From positions 3,448,152-3,512,151 of the forward strand of contig NW_002060944.1 in NCBI RefSeq assembly GCF_000150275.1: a stretch of 64,000 nucleotides of DNA, in the 5' to 3' direction. The position numbers were made by a program, and so were the translations under genes. Shown here in pieces: positions 48,846 to 64,000 of this stretch. The stretch is from Trichoplax adhaerens (Eukaryota > Animalia > Placozoa). A model generated the notes under the pieces. That model saw only the letters and a list, made by a program, of their open reading frames with translations. It made no database searches and was not told the origin of the DNA. How positions within the stretch are numbered: the stretch's first letter is position 1; the number at the start of each line of letters is the position of its first letter.

Positions 48846-51800
48846 TTATGACACTTTCTTCTTCCAGCCTTTCTGAACTGTTTTTGAGTATCTTGTCACG
48901 ACTTCCTTAAATAGGTCTACATAGGAGTACTTAGTATTAGCATAAATAATCCAGTAATATTTATGGAAGAAAAACAGCTAAGATATTATTTATATAGTAA
49001 TTATGAAATGACTGTACCACTTTCTAAGGCTTTCGATGCTGCATTCTTTTCTGCCATTTTAATACTGTTTTAAATAACACAAAATTAATCAGTAAAAAAG
49101 TAAATTACATAATTGCATGCTACATGCTAATACATTTATGCTTACCTGCTTCCAATACCTGTAGCTATACATTTTCCATGTAAGTGGACCTCAACTGACA
49201 ACAGACAAAAGAGCGAATCATAGAGTCATCGCTATTGCTAAATAACACATTTTTAGCATCCAAAATTTCATTATGACTGTTACTATTATCAACATACCTG
49301 TAAATTCTCTTTGGTTTCCGAAGCTATAATTTCTGATTACGCTTTAAAACAAATAGTAGTGAATTAATAATTCGTTTTAATTATTCTACTTATACTGTAA
49401 ACTGACACCCTTACACATATTTTGGATATTCTGGTTGCTTATTAGTTTTACGCATCATAATGCAATAATTATTTAGTCTCGACTTGGGATCGAATTTTCC
49501 CAGATCGGGAATTATATCCTACATCAAGATGAAAATCTTAAATCAAGCTCAAATAGATACATTTAGTCTTAACAGTATCACTTAAGAAATTCATTCTTGT
49601 AATACTGTAGTTGCAATCTATAAAAATAATATATTGTTATCGTTAGTGAAGTTCTATTAATAGTACCTTAATTTTTGAAAAAAAACAAACACTGCAAAAG
49701 GCTTCTACGTATGATATCCCTTTATCGATGAATAATGCCCCAATAAAAGCTACATAAAGTTAAAATCGGGTAAAATGATAATTTTCATCATTTTTCGTAA
49801 ATAGAGCACTTTTAAAAACACTAATAAATAATGTCTTTTCAAAATGCTATCAGCTAATTACATTCCAGTATGTCTGCCATGATCTTTTGTCGCTTTGAAT
49901 GTAAAATCTACCAACAAAAGATTAAAAATCAACAACTTTGCTTAATGACGAATCATTCGTATACGGTATGCTCTATCTAAGTTAGCAAAACAAAGGTAGT
50001 ATAATCTTTACCTTATCTCGGTCATTCACACCGGTATACAAATACTTATCCAACAACAAATCCTCAGCGACTTTACTTTGTAATTCATTATTGGAAAGTG
50101 AACTCCTTAAAATCTTAAAAATTATGATGGAATATCCACCAAATGTTATGCTAAATTTTTAAATCGCTTAAAGTCAAAAGTCAAGCAATTATCTTACACT
50201 TAGATGACCTTCACGGTAATGTGGAAATTGGCGATATACATGTGAAGCTAGCATGTAACTTAAGATCGCATCTCCAAGAAATTCTAGCCTTTGATAATCT
50301 CCTCTGGACAAATAAACAAATAACATTAAATCTTCAGTATAATCGAAATATCAAATGACGTAAGAATTTATAACGCACATTGTTAAATGATTTAATCCAG
50401 CTGATGGATGGGTAAACGCTTTAGCTAATAACCGTATATGTTTAAATTCGACACCGATCGATTCTTCAAAATCGGTTAAACCCTATTAGATAGCGATATA
50501 AATAGCCGGTTGAATTACTTTTATTAAACCTTATCACGAAACAATCATGGCAGTGTTTAAGTTATTTAACCTGCAAAAACTGAGATTTCGGAATCAATAT
50601 TCGGTCACCGTCTGGAAACTGTTCCTACAGCGGTGCATAATAACAATAAAGCATTAGACAGTAATACAGATAAGCTATTGCCAAGAAAGAGTTTAGTGTT
50701 TCGAAATATAAGCTAGTTTGTAACTGAATATTGAAACAGCTCACCTGCAATGGGTGCGTTACAAGATTCATCCAAGTTCCCATAAGTTCACTCTGCGCGT
50801 AATAAAACGTATTGTTTGATTAATAAAATAACTGTACTTAAATACTCTCGCTAAATGACAGTGGATTCGTATTACATCGTCATCGAATGTTAGCTTGCCA
50901 AAAATTTCTCGGACTCTATCAAGTCCATTTTCCAAATACATTGCACCTGGTGTACATTATAAAAATGAAATACTATTAAAATTAAGAATAAAATTTGCAA
51001 TTTAGATTCAATGAACAAAATGTCTTAACCAAATAATGCTTCTACGCCGTTAGCGATGGAGCGATCTAGATTATTGTTTTTAAGGGCTCTAAGAAATTAT
51101 TTGAAGATTAGAGGCAGATATGATCTTGTCTAAAAGCTTTCCGAGATTGAATTCTTAGCTCGTACTCATGAGAATAAGCCAAAAATTCGTCGAGTTTGAG
51201 TTTCTGAAAAGTAAAGATACCTTGTTTACAAAATTTGTATCTAATAATTAATTTTATGATATAAAGCGTACCTTTCCTAATCTTCCCAGTTGTTTATTAT
51301 TTACTAAGGCTGACCGATACACTGATAAATCTCCCTCCGATAGGTCAGGAAACATAAAAAATAGTTCGACGCTAAAAGTATCAACGGTATGTTATAAGCA
51401 AATATTCGTAGATTAGGTCCAGTCTAAGCTTTCAAAATATAGCAGTTATTCCAGTCTCCACAAGATGGAAATTGATTATCGAAGATTAGTATGTGAGAAA
51501 ATCGAAATTAAATATAAATATACGTTATTAATGCCAACAAGAACACACCTTGAAATATAATTTATTACTGCATCACCAAGATATTCTAGAGTTTCGTTAT
51601 CCAAGATACTTATTTAAATAGAATGATATTATTGATAATTTATACAATACTAAATAACATGTATACGTGCATAATACTGTATTTATTTTATATATACGGA
51701 TCTACCTTGTTTCAAGCTCTGTTGATAAAATTTTTCTGGCTTTCTGTGGATTTAATTCTAATTATGGTGACAAAGGCACATAGTTCATCGTGAACACACG

Positions 51801-54800
51801 AGTATATTAAATACTAAAGAAAAAGCTATTTATCATGAAGATGTGCAGCAAATTATACCCTTAAGGTCATCGATATCAGTCATATGGTTTCCTCCAGCAT
51901 AGTGCGGATTCTTAATGCCACAATTAAATAAGCTACAAAGAATATGATCCATTTCGCAGCCGTCTCGAATGTTGGCATGGGTTTTATTCGCAAGAGCACG
52001 CTTTGTGACCGAATTAATTTTGGACATGAGTATTTATCAAGGATATTATAATTTAGTATTATTTTATAGGCCAAAAAGTAACCAACTAGAGTGCACAACA
52101 TAAAAGTAAACAGTTTGTACTTATATTGCGTTACGTTTATACCAATTGCTGTTTTATTGTATCATCGCAACTTAGATTTACGCTTTATACGTCGTCTAAT
52201 GTAATAGCATACCTCACTGACTAAATTTTTAACGAAACCAGGATTAATTATCAGCATTGTAATAAAATTTCAGTTTTCAAAACGAAATTAAAATGCATCG
52301 GATATCAATAAAAACTTTGGTTTCTGTTTAACTATTTTAAGATGGTATTATAAATAGAGTAAGCATACAGTTCATAGCTTAATAAGGTACATATAATCGA
52401 GGTGAAATCTACGATAACCCCTCTCCAACTATTTGAATACCTGCAGCAAAGATTTGCGTTTGAAAGAATATCCTATGGCTTCTTCAAAGTAGTAAAGACT
52501 GCGATGAAACCGGATATGATGCACAAGAGTTGGCAAAAGTAAGGCATGCTATGTTAAGTACCAGTAACAAAAGTTAGTTGTGGAACGAGGTCTGAGAATT
52601 TCACTTCTTCTCGATACTAATGAAAATTTTTCTTCTTTACCTGTGTTATATCACCTTTTAAGCCGATTCTGTTAAACCTCTCTCCGTCAATTACAACCCT
52701 TACTTCACGTTTAAGATTACTAATATATAGGCCCAAATAATTTAATATGCTGATGATTTTCAATTATAAATATTTTATTAAATAACGTTAACCTAGATTC
52801 TTTTATACGTGATAACTTTTCTTCAGCTTTTCGCATCAGTTCGCTGACCTGCTTTCCACTTTTTAGCAAGACTCTAGATTACCAGGAAAATTGACAGCTT
52901 ATTAGTAGAATTATAATCTTGTTTATGAATAATGTAAAAAAAACAGTACATTATCAGTACCCGGCTTTAAACCCCTCTCTTAGAGTATTTCGTTCATGGC
53001 AAATTTCTAAATATCTACAATGAGAGTACAGCCGATAAAATTTTATGTAATTCACGCAAATAAACAACTTCGGTTTCACCATTAGTTGAATTCATGAATG
53101 CTTTAAACTAGCAAATTTACTTCTTGTTATTTAAATAGCTATGATGGTGAGGCCGATGACTGCAATGAATAACTTTCGGGTACGTCTAGAAATAGACCAG
53201 ATGCCAACAACTCGCTTTAAAAATTAATTCTTCAAAGCATACATATTTCAAATCGTATATTACCCTAGACTCGTAGCAGACTTTACTCCAATCAATATCA
53301 TCAACACGAATAGTAGACGGTTTCTAATAAATAATATCAGAGTATCAGCTGTGTTTGCAGTATCAGTATTGCTACTTCATGTATATTGAGTCCGATAAGG
53401 AGCATTACTAAGAAAGGCGAATAGACTAGTGATCCAGTAACTTCATTCGTAATTTTTTTTCTGTCTTCGTTGTCATACAACAAACACTGAACCTAAAAAG
53501 AATCATTACATCTATCTTAGATTAATTTAAATGATCAATAAGATTATCGACTCGATAACTTACATCAAACAGAGGTTGAGAAAAGTTTAAAATATACTCC
53601 AATACTTCAGCTACAGATAACGTCTCTACGCTTTTCTCTAAATTTTAAAAGTCAGTTATGCACAGTATTTACGTGTGAAATATTCTGGATTGCCCCAAAA
53701 TATAAGCAAAATGTATAACACTGCAAGTATAAAAAGTAAAGCGACTACTATAATAACAGTCTTACCATGGCTTTTTCTGACGAATAGAGGTATAAAATAA
53801 AATAATCTTCCATCACCGTTTGGATCTGTAGTACAAATATTTATTATCAATTAATTTGGTATTAAAATTGAATAATCGTACCTTTCGTATAACATGTGTT
53901 ATTACATCATAACACCGCAATAATCACTCTAAAAGATGTATTTATTTAATTAATTATTCGTATAAAGCGTTATATAATTCTCCATTATCAATTGTTGTAC
54001 GTGGCCCAATTAAAAAGTAAAAAGTGATATCGCTCCATAACACTTATACGTTTATTCAATATCAGATTACTTTGAAATAAATTTATGACGACTATAACTG
54101 TAGATATTCTTTAACTAAGCCGCGTCGTATGTTAACCAACCTTTTAAGCTCCAATCCGGTAGCTCTAATAGATGATCGAACAAAAATTCTTGAAATAATT
54201 CGAGATCTTGTAAGGTATACGCCTGGTCGTAAAGAGTAATAAATATGCAGTTAAATAACCCATGACTAACGGATAGAGTCAACTAGTTATAAAGGTCAAA
54301 GCACTTTCCAATATTTAATCTAACATACCAATGAAATTGGTTCAGCATTAGCAGAGATTTTATACTGGCGATTATACCGATGAAGAAGACAAACCGGTAT
54401 ATTCTCGAGAGGATAATGAGATAATATAGAAAAGCCTTCAAATACATATTCGTTGTTGTTTTTCCGTATAACTGTTGGATGATCACTCTATACGAATGTT
54501 AAGTTATAATATTTAATAACGAAGAAAGAGATTTTTAAGTATTAGTTGTCAAACATTTAATTACTTTAAAATTGACTGAAGGCCAAATTGCAATTCTGTA
54601 ATGGTAGAATTTATTGTAGGAACATGTCCAGGGATCGTAAGCAGGTACGGCCTTCGTGATACAGGGAAAATATAGAAGTTTAAATTGCGATATCATAGCT
54701 GCAATCTAATGATAAACTAAATATGATGCTATGGCGATTTGATTTCTTTTATTTACCTGTTCTCCTACATATTTATAGTGTAGTAGGCCTTTCTTATTAG

Positions 54801-56759
54801 TTGTACATTTGCATATACATCCACTGTAATTCTTTAAGAGCAAAATATGCAGAATCAAAGGAAATTTCTAAACCTGTGCCGGTTAAATAGCTTCACCGAC
54901 GATAGCCATAATTAATTAGCACAACTTTATTAATATACTGTACAGCGTACAGTATCTATCACTATACTTAATATGCTTCAAGATAGAGATGTAAATTTAA
55001 CTTAAGACTAGAGTACCAGAACACTGAGCTAAATTGTGTACAGCTGTTAGCTGCATTTAATAATTAATTAACGAAACCTCAGTACAATTTCAGTAAACTT
55101 CTTAGTTCTATTGATAAGATTAAGGTAAGTGTAATTAAAATAAAAAGATTCATTAGTGCGAGTTGCGCTAATTGCATGTAGTAAACTAGCACCAGAATTA
55201 TTTTTTATGAAATTGTAAGTAATTTACAGTAGAGGAGGTGGGATTCCTACCATGTTAGACTCATTATAATAGACGTTACTATGCATGATACTCTTTCTCG
55301 ATGATGCAATATCAGGGATTAGTCTTTTTTTAAAGTTGGCATGTAACAGCTTTAAATTAAGAGTTGCAGAACACAGCATCAGCCTCTTTCCCTATAATTA
55401 ATAGCCAATAGTGATCGCTAATTAGACAATTCAAAGCGTTGTACCAGGTACTTAACTAGGTATAGTTGAGGTTCACCTGCACTTCTATCAAATCTTGTTT
55501 ATAATAATATGGATTAACAGTTCTCCAAAGTACTCGGTAATTTTCTTCCTTTACTAGGAGTTCGTCATTTTCAAATTCAGCATCTTGGTCATTGTTGATG
55601 TTTGACACATTTTGTTTCGAGCTTACGCCTTCAAATTCATCTGGTGCTAACCTATGCGTGTCCATATCCATTTCATTCCGGAATAGATGAGCATCAAAAC
55701 TAAAAGGAGACATTTTAAGACAGCAGGATTTATCATAAAGAACAAGTTTCATTCCATCTCTGTTTAATTAACATAAGAGCATGCCTATTCAATTACTTCT
55801 TGCTTACCCTTGTGGGCTATGGTTATAATCTACTACGATTGGCTCACATGATATATTTACGTTCCTATTTCTTGAGCCTATTGCTGTAGATTATCACACA
55901 ATCTGAATTATTCTCATCCATGTTTTGAGTAGATATTCAACAAACTGTGTACGAATTATACAGGATATGTTACATTCGTTAGGTAATATTTCTACTACGA
56001 ATAATGCTGACCGGTAGGTTGGTTTTCTGTTACTCTTGTTGGATTAATCCTTTGGTAATTACTATCGCTGGTAGCTTTCCTATAGTAGTAATTGAAAGCA
56101 AGATTAATCATTATACTTTACTGTATATCAACGCCTATAATTGTAAACAAGCTAGTTGGATTTTTCTGCATTTTCTATAAAGGATACGTATAAATCATTC
56201 GTTGCATGCACATTGCACAGGTGCTACAAGGGGTAAATATCTTAATAAATCAAGTATTGCGCTACCTACAAGATCAGTATAGTATCATGTTGTCACACAC
56301 CACTAGAGACAAAGTAAGTTTACACACGATAACGCCTCTTACTGACTTAACGAGACGAGATTAGCTATATCACGGTTATTATCACCAAATAGTTCAGCTC
56401 TAACGACTAAATACTATAGTATAGCTATAGCGCCACTGATAGTGTAGATGAGGTAGTCAGAGAATGATCTACTATTGATTACTGAAGAAATCTTAACAAC
56501 CAAGATTGTAGTCTTGCCAATTCAATAGCAATTGACAAACTAGTTAACTCACTAACCGACTACTAACTACAAAGTGATCTTCATGCACTAGCCTTTTCTA
56601 GTCTCGTCAGAAACTCCTGGAGCACATAAAGTAAAACTATCCTTCTATAGTTATAGGAACTAATATGATAAGGATACTAATATTACTATGCGTATGATTC
56701 ACTCAATGTCAAGCTTGGTTTACCTCCACATTACACGTCAAGATTGCTCACCTCTTCAT
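48846..56759 (-). CDS. DROSHA: Drosha (class 2 RNase III): central Platform/PAZ-like domain, RIIIDa, RIIIDb and dsRBD, ~30+ exons
   Basis: Minus-strand exons translate colinearly with recalled human Drosha: ICKCTTNKKGLLH, FYHYRIAIWPSVNF, PTVIRKNNNEYVFEGFS, KPSTIRVD, HALLLPTLVHHIRFH..IGYSF, SLFNCGIKNPHY, NETLEYLGDA (~51570-51600), IANGVEALFGAMYL, LTDFEESIGVEF, QRLEFLGDA (~50268-50294), MADILESFIGALFID, DPKSRL and GIGSSIKMAEKNAASKAL. The stop is at 48846-48848. The 5' end is uncertain: an in-frame ATG exists at 55671, and small upstream exons may extend to ATG 56759. Confidence 0.93.
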
Positions 56760-57084
56760 CTTGGCTTTGAAATGATTTCTTACAGCATTCTACTCAGATG
56801 CGATCATCCAATGCATATGCAGTTTATCCAATCTATGTAAAATTGAGTCTTTCTACTAGTGTAGCTGCACTAACTTCTGCTTAATATATCAACCAGACTT
56901 TTCTGCATTAATTTTGTTGAACTTTGCCCTTCTCAAGCCACTATTAAGAGACCGAAACAGGAAGCAGATTCGATTACTGATCTGCTCTCAGCCCTCAGGT
57001 CCTTTCATCGATTTTCCAGTACTGGACAGTATTATACGTCCAGCAGTAGATACAAACTGACTAGTGTACCATGCCACAGTACGG

Positions 57085-57226
57085 AATCGATGTCACTCGT
57101 CCGAACAGAGCTTTTGGCCAGTTGGTGACATGATTTTTTATTCCAGAATATAGTCTAGTCTGGGATCGGGAACAGAATGATGTCACGTCGCCTCTACTGC
57201 ATTTAGGCCATTGGCGACATGATTTT
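57085..57226. repeat. Two diverged copies of a ~50-nt self-complementary element upstream of Drosha
   Basis: Copy 1 (57085-57135): AATCGATGTCAC..TTTTGGCCAGTTGGTGACATGATT. Copy 2 (57176-57224): AATGATGTCACGTCGCC..TTTAGGCCATTGGCGACATGATT. Confidence 0.7.
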
Positions 57227-58052
57227 AGCTCGATCTGGGCAATTAAACGCCGGTTTTAGCTCTGGCTTTTTACTCAATCCCTACGATTTTTACTACAAAC
57301 TACTGTCTAAAGTACTGTAGCTGTTTGTGTTTGCCCACGGCACATTTGTTGCAAATATTGTACTCTCCTTATTATGAAGCTCAGCAATAAGCATTCGTCA
57401 GCACCAACTGCAGTTGTCGGCAATGCATGCAATCTTTTAGAACTTTAAAATGCCAATCATAAACAGCAGTTGAAGTATCTCTTGCATACTACAAACGGAA
57501 GTCTTTCTTTATTGCAGTTCAGCTGTCTAATACAACATTTTAGAAGATAGACCATGACAGAGTATGGATTAATTAACCTACAGAATGAATACATGTTACA
57601 ACGATCCGTGTTGCTCTTCATGAGAAATATTATTATCGTACGGTACATCGTTAATAAAGCGTGAAGTTGTATACTCCACGTTAAATAATCGTGGAGCTGA
57701 AAGTAAAATAGTTCATAGCTTGATCTCGTACAGCAATAGACGACGTAAGTGCAATAAACTAACGAAAACGAAACAAGAATTCCTGCTGGCACTTTTCTGC
57801 AAAGGCATGCTACTATTGCAGCACATTTGTTTTTTATAAAATGGTCAATTCTGCTGTGTGTTACTACAATAGCTAGCTAATTTTGTCATACGCGTACAAG
57901 TACAGCAGTAAAAACATAACAGTTATTTATTTTCAAATAAAAGCTATTGGTGAACGGCCTTCAGGTGTACAGTATATAGAAATCAAATGAGCTACCATAC
58001 AGTATACAGTACAATACATTAAATTGGCAAAGATCCAAATTTTATAGTCAAT

Positions 58053-58460
58053 TTAAAATAATTTGGAAGATCCGTCGGCATGAAAATATTGCAACAAATA
58101 GCAACAGCAAAATATTTGAGTGACTTTGTGGCCGACGGAAATGATATAAAGTGTTAAAGGATATCCTTGGAAGGACACGTGTGGCGCGTCGAGTGCAGCT
58201 ATTAACACCGCCAAGACAGTAGCGGTATGGCAAGCACTGAATTGGCTTTGGCTCAAAAACCACTGATCCAAGACATATCCTAGCGATAGAGAGCACATCC
58301 AGGTAATGAAAAAAGGCATAAAGGAAGGCTTAGGCTCCTTGTCTCTGAGTACAATTTTAATCCAGGGATTACCGAAGAGAAGAGGCGAATACCAGAACGC
58401 CCCAATGATTTGATCCACTACGAGGTAAGATACGAGTCTGACCCAAAGTTCGTAAGCCAT
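58053..58460 (-). CDS. DUF1761-family four-helix membrane protein, copy 1 (intronless CDS, 135 aa)
   Basis: Signature IGAFWYSPLLFGNPW followed by three more hydrophobic segments and a C-terminal PH..F...P...Y.I..GH pattern. Paralogous to the ORF at 61888. Confidence 0.8.
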   Translation of the reverse strand: MAYELWVRLVSYLVVDQIIGAFWYSPLLFGNPWIKIVLRDKEPKPSFMPFFITWMCSLSLGYVLDQWFLSQSQFSACHTATVLAVLIAALDAPHVSFQGYPLTLYIISVGHKVTQIFCCCYLLQYFHADGSSKLF

Positions 58461-59007
58461 GTCTTGTTATTTCCGTAAAACTAAGAATAGCTAAAAAAAA
58501 GCGCAAATAGAAAGAGGTTGGAAAATAAGAAAACGAGCCAACTTGAATTAGACCTGAATTTTATACAGTAGACAAGCCTGATGATGACACTATCATGCAC
58601 GTTGTTCATGTTGCATCCAGTTTTGTTGTATAACATTGTCCATCTCACAGTCAATACTAGCACATTGCTGTATTCCTGGAGGTCACTGGATGAGCATTCG
58701 AATGCAGCAGCGTTGCTCTACCGCTGACTTTTGTATACTGTCTGTTTTTAACTCGCTAAGCAATAATCTCAGCAAGATTGCAGATACTTGGCTACAGTCC
58801 ATATGCAATGCAATCCATCAAGCTTGGCAAATACAATAACAGAGGTAAGATAATCATACCATCGACTTGTATACTCTAATCTTACCTTGAAAAGAAGAGC
58901 AAAATTGAAAAGATGCCTGCAAATTCTTGTCTCCTTTAGCAGCGAACAATCGACAATATTAGTCCAGCATTCAAGGTCTCAAGTGCATCTGTAGGCAATG
59001 CGCTTGC

Positions 59008-59015
59008 CTTATATA
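59008..59015 (-). promoter_or_regulatory. Putative TATA box for DUF1761 copy 1
   Basis: Minus-strand TATATAAG lies ~125 nt upstream of a strong donor AAG|GTAAGA (58885). That donor pairs with the acceptor TTTTTTTTAG (58491) just before ATG 58460. Confidence 0.45.
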
Positions 59016-61887
59016 ACTGAATGTTAACTAAGGGTTATGCTAGCCCATACCATACATTCATACTGTACACTGTAATCGGTTACAGGTAGAGTACAGACGC
59101 ATGAGTAGTTTACTGCATACTGTAACTGTACTCTACTGGACTGTATAGAGTAGTTGTGCTTTGGGGCTAATGGGACAAGTCTCAACTTGCATTTGCCTAT
59201 GTTGACATGGCATCAGCAACCATTTCCGAAATTGTGGGCCTTGGACACATGTTGACAAATAAACTATTTACTGTTTTATGCAGAATGTAAATACAAATGC
59301 ATATTCTATCCAGCAACGCATTCATTTTATGTTAACAAGCAGAACCCCCTGTACCTTCGTAGAGCTATTAGTGAATCATACAGCAATGGAATCAAATTGC
59401 TCTCAAGCAAGCAGATACATCGATTGTTATTTTTGCAGCAAGACGAAGCAGTTTAAAGGAGAATTTGGCGCCATTCCATCGGACTACACCACAATACCAT
59501 GTGCTTAAATTACTCGAGCAATGTACAGTCTAGTGTACACAGTAATGTTCTATCTTTGCTGTTGAACTGAATAAATGTCAACATCTGACAGAGCGACAAA
59601 ATCCTGCAGCGAAAAATAGCTGGACAGTAATTTAATTTCGCTACAAAATTAAGCTGGAAAGTCAATCCTTTTTTCTCCAATCACGTCAACGGTCCCAACA
59701 CAATGCCATAGTTATGTCTATTTTACTGTAGTATTTGTTCATGACTTTATACTACGGCATAATCTTTTAATCCTGATAGATATTTATTCTGAACAAATAG
59801 ACTCATCCATGGACTACTAGATTACAGGTTATATCGAGTAGTCCATGAACATGACTCATCGTAGTCACGGTTGATAGAAATAAATTACTACGTATTCTAA
59901 TTAAAGACACTGTGCACCAAAATTATCCATGAGGTACGTATGAGCTCATCTTTTGCATCTCTGAAAGTGAGCGTGAAATTAAGGTATGTAAAGTAAATGG
60001 CAATATACCAAACCGAGCAAGCAGAGAAAGTGCTATACACCTAGTGTACGTTACTTTTCGTGATGCTTATCCGGAAATTAAAAGGCTAACAAAGAAAAAG
60101 GAGTTCGCGAGAATCCTGACTGCCGTATGCCTTTATGCACACTTTGAAACGTAACCGTCTATTGAAAAAAATTGATATCAAAGCAGACATGAATAATATT
60201 TAAAATTTCCGTGATACTATTACGGTCACATCTGACGATGCCTTAAACAATACGTTCATATAATTAGTTCAATAATTAAATCAGGTTGAAACCTTATTTT
60301 TCCATCAAAACTTAATGTTTATTTTTCATCTAGTGTATGGCACTAGCTAAATAGCGCACAGTATTTGTCTATTTACCTTACCCTGAAAAAACAAAATTCC
60401 TCAAGAGAGATGCCAATCTGGACGGGTTGACTGTAATTGTGGTCTCTACAGTAGTTGTGAGCAGCAAGCCCATGAAATTTGTAGCACAATACGTACTTTC
60501 ATGTACAGTAGTGTTATTTACTTCGAAGCAGAATTTAACAAATTTTCGAGTACTCGGGGAGATAAATTTAGTTCTAACTGTGCCGCTAGCTAACTTCCAA
60601 CGGAAATGTTCTTCTTGTACGAGTATATTCTTTACAGTATTGAACTGCCTACAGTACATACAAGCACAAAATCGGAACATGTTGCCGACATGTTGTGTAC
60701 TTTGCAAATAACAGCACGTTGCATTTAGCAACTTTACAGCATGCTCTACAGCATTGAAAAAGAGTCTGATAACATTTTTATCATACTGCATCTCGGACAT
60801 TCACATATTAGTACAGTACTATACTGTACTATAGTCTGCAGCTATTTGATGTAACTTGAAATACCAGCATACTGGCAAATATTTCGAATCCGAGCTCTGC
60901 AAACGATGCCAAAAATTCTGAGTGGATGACAGTTTATTAACATGAGAATACTGTGTAAAATGCAAAAAAGTTGGATTCTATCCAAAAATACTCATTTGGA
61001 TCAATTGCTTTTCATTATCTTTCATACTGTACTGTTATTGCTTGATCACTCTTGCAGCCAAGTGCACTATTCTATTCTTTCTTACGATATACGAGTACAA
61101 TATATGATCACTGTAACTGTAGGTGATAGAAATACTAGCATGCTTTAGCAGAAGCCTTGGAGGAAATATCGCAAGGTTTTATTGAACCAAGTACAACTTT
61201 AAAATCAATGAACGTTTCATTGCAATTGAGCATGTATCCCAAGGAAACAGTACTAATGCATACTGCTGCTAGTCTTGAAGCACAATGTGCAAAATTTGAA
61301 AATAGAACGTATCACGAAATCAATCATACACGAATAGGTACTATGAGATTTGAACATTATGTTTATCATTGCGAAGCCGCAGCTCATGGCTACAAACTTC
61401 GAATGAAAGTCTTGTAAAACAAGGCATTTACGAATTTGACTAGCAAGTAGCGATAAGTAGCAATACCTTGCCTACACTTCATCAGTGAATCAACATGTAA
61501 AGCATTATCGTGGTATGTTTTTACATTTGTCCAAAGCAACACGAGTGCATTGTACTTTGATAGATGCAAATTGAGAGAACATTGCATAATTTAACAATAA
61601 CCGCAATTGTAAGATTGTACATTTACTTGCATTAAAGACAACGAATCAAATATAAAAACTAGCTATTCGTGTTAATCACGACATGAGAAAGATCTTCAGG
61701 TCATGGAGCGATATGGATGTACAGAGGCACATCTACACGCTAGACATACTACGGTATACAGTACTGCATAAAGCAACTCTAATTTACAACATGCATGTGG
61801 TCTTAAAAGCCACCTTACAAGAAATAGATCAATTGATTGGCTTTGATCCTTCATCTCTCACCGCAAAGGAAAGCACCAACATTTTGA

Positions 61888-62289
61888 TTACTGTTGATGA
61901 ATCAGATAACGATGTATGTAGGCCATGGCTGCAACACAGGCAATACTATGGCTACAATCGATTAAATAGACTATTGGAGACCACTGAGAGAAGGCAAATT
62001 GAGGTGCTGCAAGAGCCATGATTACAACCGACGCAATGGCAAGAGTTGGAACGAAGCCATAAGTTGTTTGTGTGCCAAACCATACATACAGCAAGTAGGA
62101 CGCGACGACATTACTTGTAAACGAGATGAGATAAGGTAAGACAGAGTTATCATTTTCCATTTTACGATTCGGAATCTTGTAAACGCGTGTATACCAAGCT
62201 TGACCAAACAGTATACCGTACCATAAAGCGCCAAGAATATGAGCTGGTATAGCAACTGCAACAATGAGACCAATTTCAACTAGATTCAT
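61888..62289 (-). CDS. DUF1761-family four-helix membrane protein, copy 2 (intronless CDS, 133 aa from ATG 62289)
   Basis: MNLVEIGLIVAVAIPAHILGALWYGILFGQAW...APQFAFSQWSPIVYLIDCSHS carries the family signature. A minus-strand TATAAA lies at ~62434-62439 and a polypyrimidine-CAG lies just before the ATG. Confidence 0.82.
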   Translation of the reverse strand: MNLVEIGLIVAVAIPAHILGALWYGILFGQAWYTRVYKIPNRKMENDNSVLPYLISFTSNVVASYLLYVWFGTQTTYGFVPTLAIASVVIMALAAPQFAFSQWSPIVYLIDCSHSIACVAAMAYIHRYLIHQQ

Positions 62290-62540
62290 TGTGATACGTC
62301 TGGAGAAAACGGAAAGCAACAAGACAAAAAAGTAGATGCAAATGCTTCAAAACTTTGCCAAGCTCAGGTGGAACTTTTCGACGAGCAGATTTTTTAGCAG
62401 CACTTAAAGTGGACAACGCGATCACGGTTGGCATTTATACTGTACTGTACCCGCCTCAGGAGATCACGGCCTCTACAATGCAAACCTTATAGTACTCTGT
62501 AGTCTGTACTGTAGCGTACTGAATTTTCTAGCTTAAGCGC

Positions 62541-62566
62541 AGTACAGTACAGTACAGTACAGTACA
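62541..62566. repeat. (AGTAC)5 microsatellite in a TACAG/CTGTA-rich patch
   Basis: AGTACAGTACAGTACAGTACAGTACA read directly. Confidence 0.9.
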
Positions 62567-62989
62567 TTCTGTAAACACACTACAGTACGCAGTACTGTAG
62601 ACCATAAACATGAATATGGATGAAGCTGAGCTCGATGTGTCTGGACACGCAACTTTCAAAACATAAAGTTTGAAGTTTTTATTGACTGTTAATTAATTGA
62701 ATTAAAGGCCCCGACACCACAATTAGTAACATGATTCTTCCCATATTATTTTGAAAACTCAGTATGTACTTACAAGGCAACGTGTTCTACAGTTGGCAAA
62801 TTACTTAGTATAGATACTGCACGCATCAAAAAATGCGTTATGTCATCGTTGTAAAAAGGTCGTCGGGTAGTCGCCTATCAGTGGGCAGTATGGTAGTTGA
62901 GGAATGCTTTAGTTATGAACAGTTTTGACAACATCATGGTCCGACTGTCATTGATTCAATTAACAAATTTTGTTGCAGAATGCATATGC

Positions 62990-63900
62990 ATAAATGAAGA
63001 TTTCGTTTTATACGGTATATATCCAAGTAGCCTATAATATAAACGCATGAGTCGTACAGTCTCATTCAATCGATGCAATATTGGCATAGGTTCAATGACT
63101 GCTGCAATGTAATTACATCCATTAGGTCGGTCAGAAATTTCTGTAGATAGTGTATATCATTATTATTATTATTATTATTATTATGAGATCCTGAGCCTAA
63201 GGGTCTCTAGCGCGCATGCTGCATATACGTGTACACAAAATGAAAATTTCAATCGATATACAGCCTGTGATATAAACTCGTGACTCGTTAGATACGGTAA
63301 GGTAGTAACCAACAAGTCTCAATCAATCGATTCATTGTATATTGGCATAGATTCTAATAACTATTACTACTGCACTTACATCCATTAGATTAATGGAATT
63401 TCTGTAAAATAGTACATACAAGCGTGTATGCTGTACTAATGAAAATTGTATTCTATACAGTATACATACGATATACATGCATGTATAAGTAGTCTTTAAT
63501 AGAGTAAACTCGTGAGTTGTTGGATACAGCAATATCTAACAAGTCTCTATCAATCATTGGCATAGATTTAAACATCGCTGCATTACACTTAAGGCATACC
63601 GTACAAAGTAAATGGATCTACAAGTAGCCTTTAATATAAACTCGTAGTCGTTGAATACCGTAATAACTGAAAAATTTTAATCAATCAATTATTGGCATAG
63701 ATTCAATTATGCTGCTGACTGTACTTACATGCATTAGCTTCTGTAAATAGGGTATATGTAATATGCAATAATAAAGATTTCGCTTTATAGGATATATACG
63801 CATCCTCTGGTACCTGCATGCTACTATAACCTTTAATTTAACAAATTACCAATTAATCATTCCTTGACATAGATTTAAGTAGTTCTGCTGTACTTATATC
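62990..63900. repeat. Degenerate tandem array, 4-5 irregular units (~135-260 bp)
   Basis: ATTGGCATAG(A/G)TT recurs at ~63080, 63340, 63556, 63691 and, degenerate, at 63862. TAGCCT.TAATATAAACTCG.GA.TCGTT-like blocks recur at ~63027, 63260, 63489 and 63624. Confidence 0.75.
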
Positions 63901-64000
63901 ATGTTATTATCCTTTTTATTGTTCTTTTGTAGACTATCAATGTGGTGAAAGATAACCTGGACAATTCATAGTACTTTTTGCAATAGTATAATCATTATCA

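Follow-up and report, generated by a model that had tools for sequence, protein, structure and literature searches.

The Drosha gene of Trichoplax adhaerens: an intact, core-only class II RNase III with its partner DGCR8 probably hidden in an assembly gap

Drosha of Trichoplax adhaerens is a ribonuclease encoded on the minus strand of the window, the 64,000-nucleotide stretch of contig NW_002060944.1 analysed here. The gene occupies positions 48846-55671 and comprises 34-35 exons that encode 945-961 amino acids (Table 1). As built from coordinates, the exon model contains 35 candidate exons and 34 GT-AG introns, totals 2886 nt, and closes in one frame with 0 internal stops at a stop codon in 48848-48846. 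The 48-nt micro-exon at 53720-53673 is doubtful; its removal keeps the frame and yields 945 rather than 961 amino acids. The gene is intact with no sign of interruption, and its product is the catalytic core only, consisting of the central domain, RNase IIIa, RNase IIIb, and the double-stranded RNA-binding domain (dsRBD). A preliminary description of this DNA had claimed an uninterrupted multi-exon Drosha frame with both RNase III signatures, which the closed GT-AG model and the PF00636 matches bear out. It had also placed the gene at 48846-56759; the lower boundary coincides with the end of the stop codon, but no coding exon was found between 55767 and 56759.

Table 1. Coordinates of the Drosha gene and its exons within the window
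Feature	Positions	Strand	Basis
Drosha coding region	48846..55671	-	ATG of H2 annotation to stop codon; exon model and H2 CDS start mapped to 55671
Exon 1, short mildly acidic N-terminus	55477..55671	-	ORF and exon model
Central domain (CED) exons, span	52441..55391	-	Splice sites and phases, human DROSHA match, PF26050 on H2 ortholog
CED exons, first part	55391-55251, 54831-54757, 54705-54565, 54487-54329, 54222-54141, 53825-53766	-	
CED exons, second part	(53720-53673 doubtful), 53637-53564, 53492-53409, 53323-53264, 53185-53121	-	
CED exons, third part	53014-52961, 52873-52793, 52719-52641, 52548-52441	-	
RNase III domain a	50876..52000	-	PF00636, motif positions, exon model
RNase IIIa exons	52000-51859, 51757-51706, 51608-51549, 51371-51272, 51203-51166, 51088-51030, 50946-50876	-	
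Linker exons between RNase III domains	50571..50792 (50792-50745, 50624-50571)	-	Position and frame only
RNase III domain b	49667..50482	-	PF00636, DROSHA RIIIDb as best solved relatives
RNase IIIb exons	50482-50379, 50303-50198, 50113-50012, 49907-49862, 49749-49667	-	
dsRBD and C-terminal tail	48846..49518	-	DROSHA dsRBD matches; PF00035 on H2 ortholog
dsRBD/tail exons	49518-49415, 49341-49298, 49194-49146, 49064-49018, 48916-48846 (including stop codon)	-	

The two tandem RNase III domains share one closed frame, and PF00636 matches four exon-bearing ORFs. In RNase IIIa, these are ORFs 51479-51613 and 51257-51391; the signature E..D motif lies in exon 51608-51549 and the second catalytic motif in exon 51088-51030, where exon translations set against the human alignment show Asn in place of Asp, a substitution shared with human domain a. 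RNase IIIb has both of its acidic pairs; its signatures fall in exon 50303-50198 and in exons 49907-49862 / 49749-49667, and ORF 50192-50350 scores 34.2 bits against PF00636 (cut-off 27). Retention of the catalytic residues, as first proposed, can be read directly in the translations of both domains. In a PDB search with the RNase IIIb exon, the top matches are human DROSHA chains (E 3.5e-12), which rank above all Dicers. Exon 49518-49417 retrieves from the PDB only dsRBD chains of DROSHA, which align collinearly; these matches are weak (E 0.08-0.8, with 2khx at E 0.08), and together with PF00035 on the ortholog of Trichoplax sp. H2 they uphold the dsRBD of the preliminary description. Exon 54222-54141 aligns with the human DROSHA central domain at 9asm_A 600-634 (E 0.002-0.004).

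Other exons yielded less. PDB searches by exon returned no match for exon 1, exon 2, exon 4, ORF 52957-53091, or exon 52000-51860, Pfam scans of the central-domain exons taken one at a time were blank, and a phmmer search with exon ORF 51836-52033 retrieved only a spurious repeat protein. Short diverged exons lie below the reach of exon-level Pfam and PDB searches. Exons with no matches were assigned by splice sites, phase, and position, and for a few of them likeness to the human sequence gave a further lead.

The placozoan origin suggested earlier is supported by comparison with Trichoplax sp. H2, whose contig NOWV01000039.1 is 99.15% identical to the window over 12.1 kb. The H2 ortholog is annotated as Drosha, has 927 amino acids, and contains PF26050 (Helical_CED_Drosha), two copies of PF00636 (Ribonuclease_3), and PF00035 (dsrm). 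Its CDS start maps to window position 55671, the same ATG, and the two genes also share their neighbours, with two DUF1761 genes upstream. The annotated H2 product is 18-34 amino acids shorter than the present exon model, so that the H2 annotation must differ from it in the calling of some small exons. Within 1600 exonic nt compared, the Drosha exons of the two lineages differ by 2 synonymous changes and 1 non-synonymous change.

These features bear on the possibility that Drosha is a decaying relic, a gene that degenerates into a pseudogene once the miRNA pathway is gone. In its favour, no miRNAs are known from this animal, and the divergence of several N-terminal exons puts them out of reach of exon-level searches. 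However, the 34-35 exons have intact splice sites with no stop or frameshift, all catalytic motifs are kept, and the same structure recurs in H2 with the few substitutions noted above. Decay is thus a highly improbable account of the gene.

The N-terminus of the protein is short. Its start corresponds to approximately residue 360-375 of the human isoform-4 chain (1337 residues). Codons 1-100 contain 3 Pro, 6 Arg, and 7 Ser. The exon 1 ORF extends without a stop as far upstream as 55767, and positions 55713 and 55752 are in-frame ATGs too. A search for Pro-rich and Arg/Ser-rich tracts in 30-codon windows, covering all minus-strand frames of 54800-58060, found at most 4 Pro and at most 10 Arg plus Ser, and all frames as far as the next gene upstream are free of stretches rich in Pro or in Arg/Ser. 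The lack of such an N-terminus had been remarked on from the outset, and it stands, as the H2 CDS begins in the same exon. The N-terminal tail of human DROSHA carries nuclear-import and regulatory sites. The human N-terminal domains are not needed for cleavage in vitro (PMC8616936), and their absence in Trichoplax is accordingly uninformative on DGCR8 dependence. The core-only architecture is natural, and it is a minor point.

DGCR8, also known as Pasha, is the partner that Placozoa were presumed to lack. Kamm et al. (2018) list DGCR8 as TrispH2_009617 on Scaffold_214 of Trichoplax sp. H2, a scaffold that by their account is unmatched in the T. adhaerens reference (PMC6057997); the gene's domain content, with Rhed/WW, two dsRBDs, and a C-terminal tail, is by supplementary-table label. 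The same scaffold also lists an Argonaute, RFC5, and Tektin-1 (PMC6057997 supplement). Bråte et al. (2018) accept the H2 finding as overturning the presumed absence of Pasha in Placozoa (PMC6206976). Because of these two reports, the premise of Pasha independence is out of date. The older summary, in which placozoans keep Drosha and lack both Pasha and miRNAs, survives for the intact Drosha and for miRNAs, none of which has been reported, but it fails for Pasha, since DGCR8 is reported in H2.

The assembly searched here comprises 105,631,681 bp in 1414 contigs. The genome search for DGCR8 called for in the preliminary description gave a mixed outcome: six-frame dsrm and WW scans found no locus combining WW with two dsRBDs, but these scans are insensitive and missed Drosha's own dsRBD, and the H2 scaffold region in question is missing from this assembly. 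A dsRBD locus at C1414:7853774-7854274 was considered as a DGCR8 candidate and rejected as Loquacious/TRBP-like, and an orphan dsRBD-like ORF on C1403 has no solved relative. RPL37A is present in this genome, though Kamm et al. list it on another "missing" scaffold. Not all genes in their table are therefore absent, and for this reason the DGCR8 scaffold was tested directly.

This comparison covers the first ~11 kb of the 120-kb H2 scaffold. The N-terminal half of the H2 Argonaute lies at the extreme start of NOWV01000214.1, and this end matches at 97% a 6,539-bp orphan contig that carries the sole Piwi-domain gene found in the present genome. The adjoining 5.2 kb of the H2 scaffold, which holds an NFACT gene, has no match in the present genome; elsewhere there is only a weak NFACT-R-like exon. 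The absence of DGCR8 here is probably an assembly gap, and the organism itself probably has the gene. It follows that Drosha need not work alone.

The preliminary description had gone further and proposed a Pasha-independent RNase III system, in which DGCR8 was lost and a core-only Drosha cuts a class of non-miRNA substrates alone or with a new partner. The assembly scans without a DGCR8-like locus, the older literature in which Pasha and miRNAs are both absent, and the intactness of the enzyme are consistent with that proposal. It is nevertheless improbable, because the sister lineage H2, 99% identical, reportedly has DGCR8 on a scaffold absent here (PMC6057997, PMC6206976), and the gap beside Argonaute is confirmed by the present comparison. 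In the human complex, DGCR8 binds through the RNase III domains (structures 5B16, 6V5B, and 6LXD). The missing N-terminal tail has no bearing on this mode of binding.

The locus is thus best explained as the ordinary, annotated Drosha of T. adhaerens, with DGCR8 very probably present in a region missing from the assembly. By this account, the two RNase III domains would form an intramolecular dimer and cleave both strands of an RNA hairpin in staggered fashion close to its base, with the central domain and dsRBD measuring and holding the hairpin stem. A DGCR8/Pasha dimer would use its C-terminal tails to bind both RNase III domains and would clamp the hairpin in its apical part. The "Drosha without Pasha" puzzle of Trichoplax is an outdated reading that probably stems from missing sequence in the reference assembly and not from biology. 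The role that a complete Microprocessor would play in an animal from which no miRNAs have been detected is a question already on record.

No miRNAs have been reported from Trichoplax (PMC3563456, PMC2655684, PMC6211395). A mir-10 family scan of the genome, in which 60 of 6973 candidates were scored, was blank, and no Rfam families were found in the window. The enzyme's canonical substrate is thus lacking from the present record, which weighs against the favoured account. The question of Drosha substrates in this animal has already been raised (PMC2655684). One answer, which we regard as a real if minority possibility, is that a complete Microprocessor would have a main job in placozoans other than miRNA production, either destabilising hairpin-bearing mRNAs or transposon RNAs or regulating its own components. 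An intact Drosha, the DGCR8 reported in H2, and the failure of small-RNA sequencing and homology to find miRNAs speak for such a role, and mammalian DROSHA has known non-miRNA targets (for example, PMC5473138). However, low-abundance or lineage-specific miRNAs may have been missed. The "twin hairpins" at 57085-57226, a single-copy stretch upstream of the gene, are an unlikely Drosha substrate, as their fold z-score of -1.26 makes them no more stable than shuffles. Our best guess at the substrates of the enzyme would include hairpins in mRNAs, transposon RNAs, the DGCR8 transcript itself, or rare undetected miRNA-like precursors.

A more specific proposal is that placozoans keep a complete minimal Microprocessor of core-only Drosha and DGCR8 whose physiological substrates would be non-miRNA hairpins in mRNAs or transposon RNAs; this is speculative and somewhat doubtful. 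If it were true, Trichoplax would be a natural system for a miRNA-independent, and possibly ancestral, function. The enzyme itself has been on record since 2008-2009, and the suggestion that it is retained for non-miRNA work appeared in print in 2009.

Drosha of Trichoplax and human DROSHA (5B16, 6V5B, 6LXD, and 9ASM) are collinear in the order of central domain, RNase IIIa, RNase IIIb, and dsRBD. Both have Asn at the second acidic position of RNase IIIa and a full acidic set in RNase IIIb. The truncated human chains in solved structures contain 986-1016 residues, which is close to the size of the Trichoplax protein; according to the explicit exon model, the placozoan enzyme is in its natural form the same core to which human DROSHA was trimmed for structural work. 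The first ~360-375 human residues, which hold the Pro-rich and Arg/Ser-rich domains, have no Trichoplax counterpart, and the N-terminal half of the Trichoplax central domain is too diverged from human for exon-level matches.

The Dicer-like genes of the same genome, at five loci on contig C1414, resemble Drosha in having tandem RNase III domains. Unlike them, Drosha has an RNase IIIb exon that scores best against DROSHA, and its central domain is present. The DROSHA enzymes of fly and worm contain the same core domains as Trichoplax and partner with Pasha/PASH-1 (PMC8616936). Their N-termini retain Pro-rich and Arg/Ser-rich domains, which vary in length (PMC8616936), whereas Trichoplax Drosha is built without them.

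The window is AT-rich (~32% G+C), and its minus strand from 48846 to ~55770 holds a series of short open segments bearing both of the RNase III signatures named in a preliminary description of this DNA. The Pfam Ribonuclease_3 model matches four of these segments, with the one at 50192-50350 scoring 34.2 bits against a curated cut-off of 27. Among all solved structures, five human DROSHA chains (E 3.5e-12 to 7e-12), aligned at the RNase IIIb position, come out as the top relatives of this exon and rank above every Dicer and bacterial RNase III. The central-domain exon 54222-54141 (minus strand) aligns to residues 600-634 of the human DROSHA chain 9asm_A (E 0.002-0.004), and the first dsRBD exon matches DROSHA dsRBD chains only, weakly (E 0.08-0.8) and in a collinear position.

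Exon borders were placed by coordinates after reading the minus strand, and homology was searched exon by exon. The Drosha model comprises 35 candidate exons and 2886 nt in all, with GT...AG borders at 34 of 34 introns (median 87 nt), consistent phases along its whole length, and no internal stops. This upholds the uninterrupted multi-exon frame described previously; its upper coordinate of 56759 is to be lowered, as coding exons are not seen above 55767. Omission of the micro-exon (see table) keeps the frame and yields 945 rather than 961 residues, and the adjoining 45-nt interval can likewise be read through in frame, which gives three in-frame variants at that place. Several exons of the N-terminal part of the central domain are assigned by splice sites and phase alone because exon-level searches with them were blank.

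Coordinates of Drosha-associated features and related loci in the T. adhaerens assembly (C, contig; L, excerpt from that contig)
Feature	Coordinates	Strand	Remark
Drosha stop codon	window 48848-48846	-	
Candidate micro-exon, 48 nt	window 53720-53673	-	doubtful; adjoining GT-AG intervals 45 and 35 nt
Pair of short inverted repeats	window 57060-57250	-	upstream of Drosha
Two intronless DUF1761 genes	window 58053-58460 and 61891-62289	-	directly upstream of Drosha; order kept in Trichoplax sp. H2
Argonaute exons	C1079 4479-2911 and 3007-1988	-	genome's only Piwi-domain gene
Two-dsRBD protein, 254 residues, single exon	C1414:7853774-7854274 = L011:1126-1887	+	only tandem-dsRBD gene found in scans
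RNase III-like/ankyrin gene	C1409:3646567-3650889 = L017:3568-7890	+	intronless 1441-residue open frame

The RNase III-like/ankyrin frame is neither Drosha nor among the genome's five Dicer-like loci. Its RNase III-like domain is N-terminal (PF00636, 25.6 bits, just below the cut-off of 27) and is followed by ankyrin repeats.

The same locus is present in the sister lineage Trichoplax sp. H2, where NOWV01000039.1 matches window 51907-64000 at 99.15% identity over 12.1 kb, with the same gene order. The exact sequence of the more distal DUF1761 gene is in a public protein collection, its 90% cluster includes RDD43348.1 of H2, and both corresponding H2 products carry PF08570. The H2 gene next to this pair is annotated as a 927-residue product with Helical_CED_Drosha, two Ribonuclease_3, Ribonucleas_3_3, and dsrm domains, and its CDS start corresponds to window 55671, within exon 1 of the model. 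The window accordingly belongs to T. adhaerens or a very close lineage, and its gene is the Drosha of published phylogenies (PMC3563456, PMC6206976). The two lineages differ at three of 1600 exonic nt of Drosha (two synonymous changes and one Asp to Asn), far too few for dN/dS, and at six of ~2165 intronic nt. That this open frame with intact splice sites is a decaying relic is highly improbable.

Older literature credits Trichoplax with Drosha, Dicer, and Argonaute but neither Pasha nor miRNAs, and already suggests a role outside the miRNA pathway as the reason for Drosha's retention (PMC2655684, PMC3563456). Publications thus far cover the gene itself, its persistence in an animal lacking miRNAs, and the non-miRNA hypothesis. 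A Drosha without Pasha, the key premise of the preliminary description, was stated in those papers and is superseded by the report of DGCR8 in H2 (PMC6057997, PMC6206976). Kamm et al. 2018 report 10 H2 scaffolds, each 48 kb or longer, for which the T. adhaerens reference has no equivalent, with DGCR8 among their genes; their supplement, also the source of its domain content here, places it (TrispH2_009617) on Scaffold_214 with an Argonaute, RFC5, and Tektin-1 (PMC6057997). Bråte et al. 2018 state that Placozoa were wrongly believed to be without Microprocessor (PMC6206976).

The T. adhaerens assembly contains a single Piwi-domain match, on the orphan contig C1079 (6,539 bp). A search with the N-terminal half of this Argonaute finds "Protein argonaute 1A, partial [Trichoplax sp. 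H2]", whose coding sequence lies right at the beginning of NOWV01000214.1 (120,563 bp), the accession of Scaffold_214. The Argonaute end of this scaffold matches C1079 at 97%, which doubles as a positive control for the DNA search of the assembly, and the adjoining 5.2 kb, with an NFACT-family gene, has zero matches anywhere in it. One weak NFACT-R-like exon occurs elsewhere in the assembly. The matched end and unmatched continuation indicate that the assembly ends in repeats beside Argonaute, without what follows. Argonaute is also split in H2: one part lies at the start of Scaffold_214 (120 kb) and the other on a 6-kb contig.

Six-frame dsrm and WW scans of the genome did not find a WW plus two-dsRBD locus, and these scans are insensitive, having missed Drosha's own split dsRBD. 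A truly DGCR8-free Drosha, as proposed initially, is unlikely, since DGCR8 is reported in H2 and the assembly lacks the DNA beyond Argonaute. The most likely reading, with good confidence, is a canonical Drosha whose partner is in the organism but absent from the assembly. The tandem-dsRBD gene was rejected as DGCR8: among solved structures it is closest to Loquacious and TRBP, which suggests that it is likely a Dicer partner.

For a canonical Drosha, the cutting mechanism would be that expected from its conserved core. MiRNAs have not been reported in Trichoplax (PMC3563456, PMC2655684, PMC6211395); a shallow genome scan for the mir-10 family was blank (60 of 6973 candidates scored), and no Rfam families occur in the window. 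A complete Microprocessor with a mainly miRNA-independent role is conceivable and somewhat improbable. The inverted-repeat pair does not appear to be a Drosha substrate: folded on the Drosha strand, its stability does not exceed that of shuffled sequence (z -1.26; 19 of 200 shuffles reach it). It occurs once in the genome.

The description of this Drosha as streamlined is correct. Between 54800 and the adjacent gene at 58053, all minus-strand frames are free of Pro-rich or Arg/Ser-rich tracts, and no 30-codon window there exceeds 4 Pro or 10 Arg+Ser. Codons 1-100 include 3 Pro, 6 Arg, and 7 Ser; over the whole model, Pro makes up 3.4%. Two anchored alignments pair model residue 238 with residue 602 of 9asm_A and residue 748 (732 if the doubtful exon is omitted) with residue 1106, which places the Trichoplax start at ~residue 360-375 in the human chain of 1337 residues. 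In solved human complexes (5B16, 6V5B, 6LXD), DGCR8 contacts the RNase III domains of DROSHA, and the missing N-terminal domains are uninformative on DGCR8. Solved N-terminally truncated human constructs, at 986-1016 residues, approximate the length of Trichoplax Drosha. In human, fly, and worm DROSHA, the N-terminus is Pro-rich and Arg/Ser-rich, varies in length, and is dispensable for in vitro cleavage (PMC8616936). Trichoplax Drosha is without such an N-terminus, a real difference between these systems.
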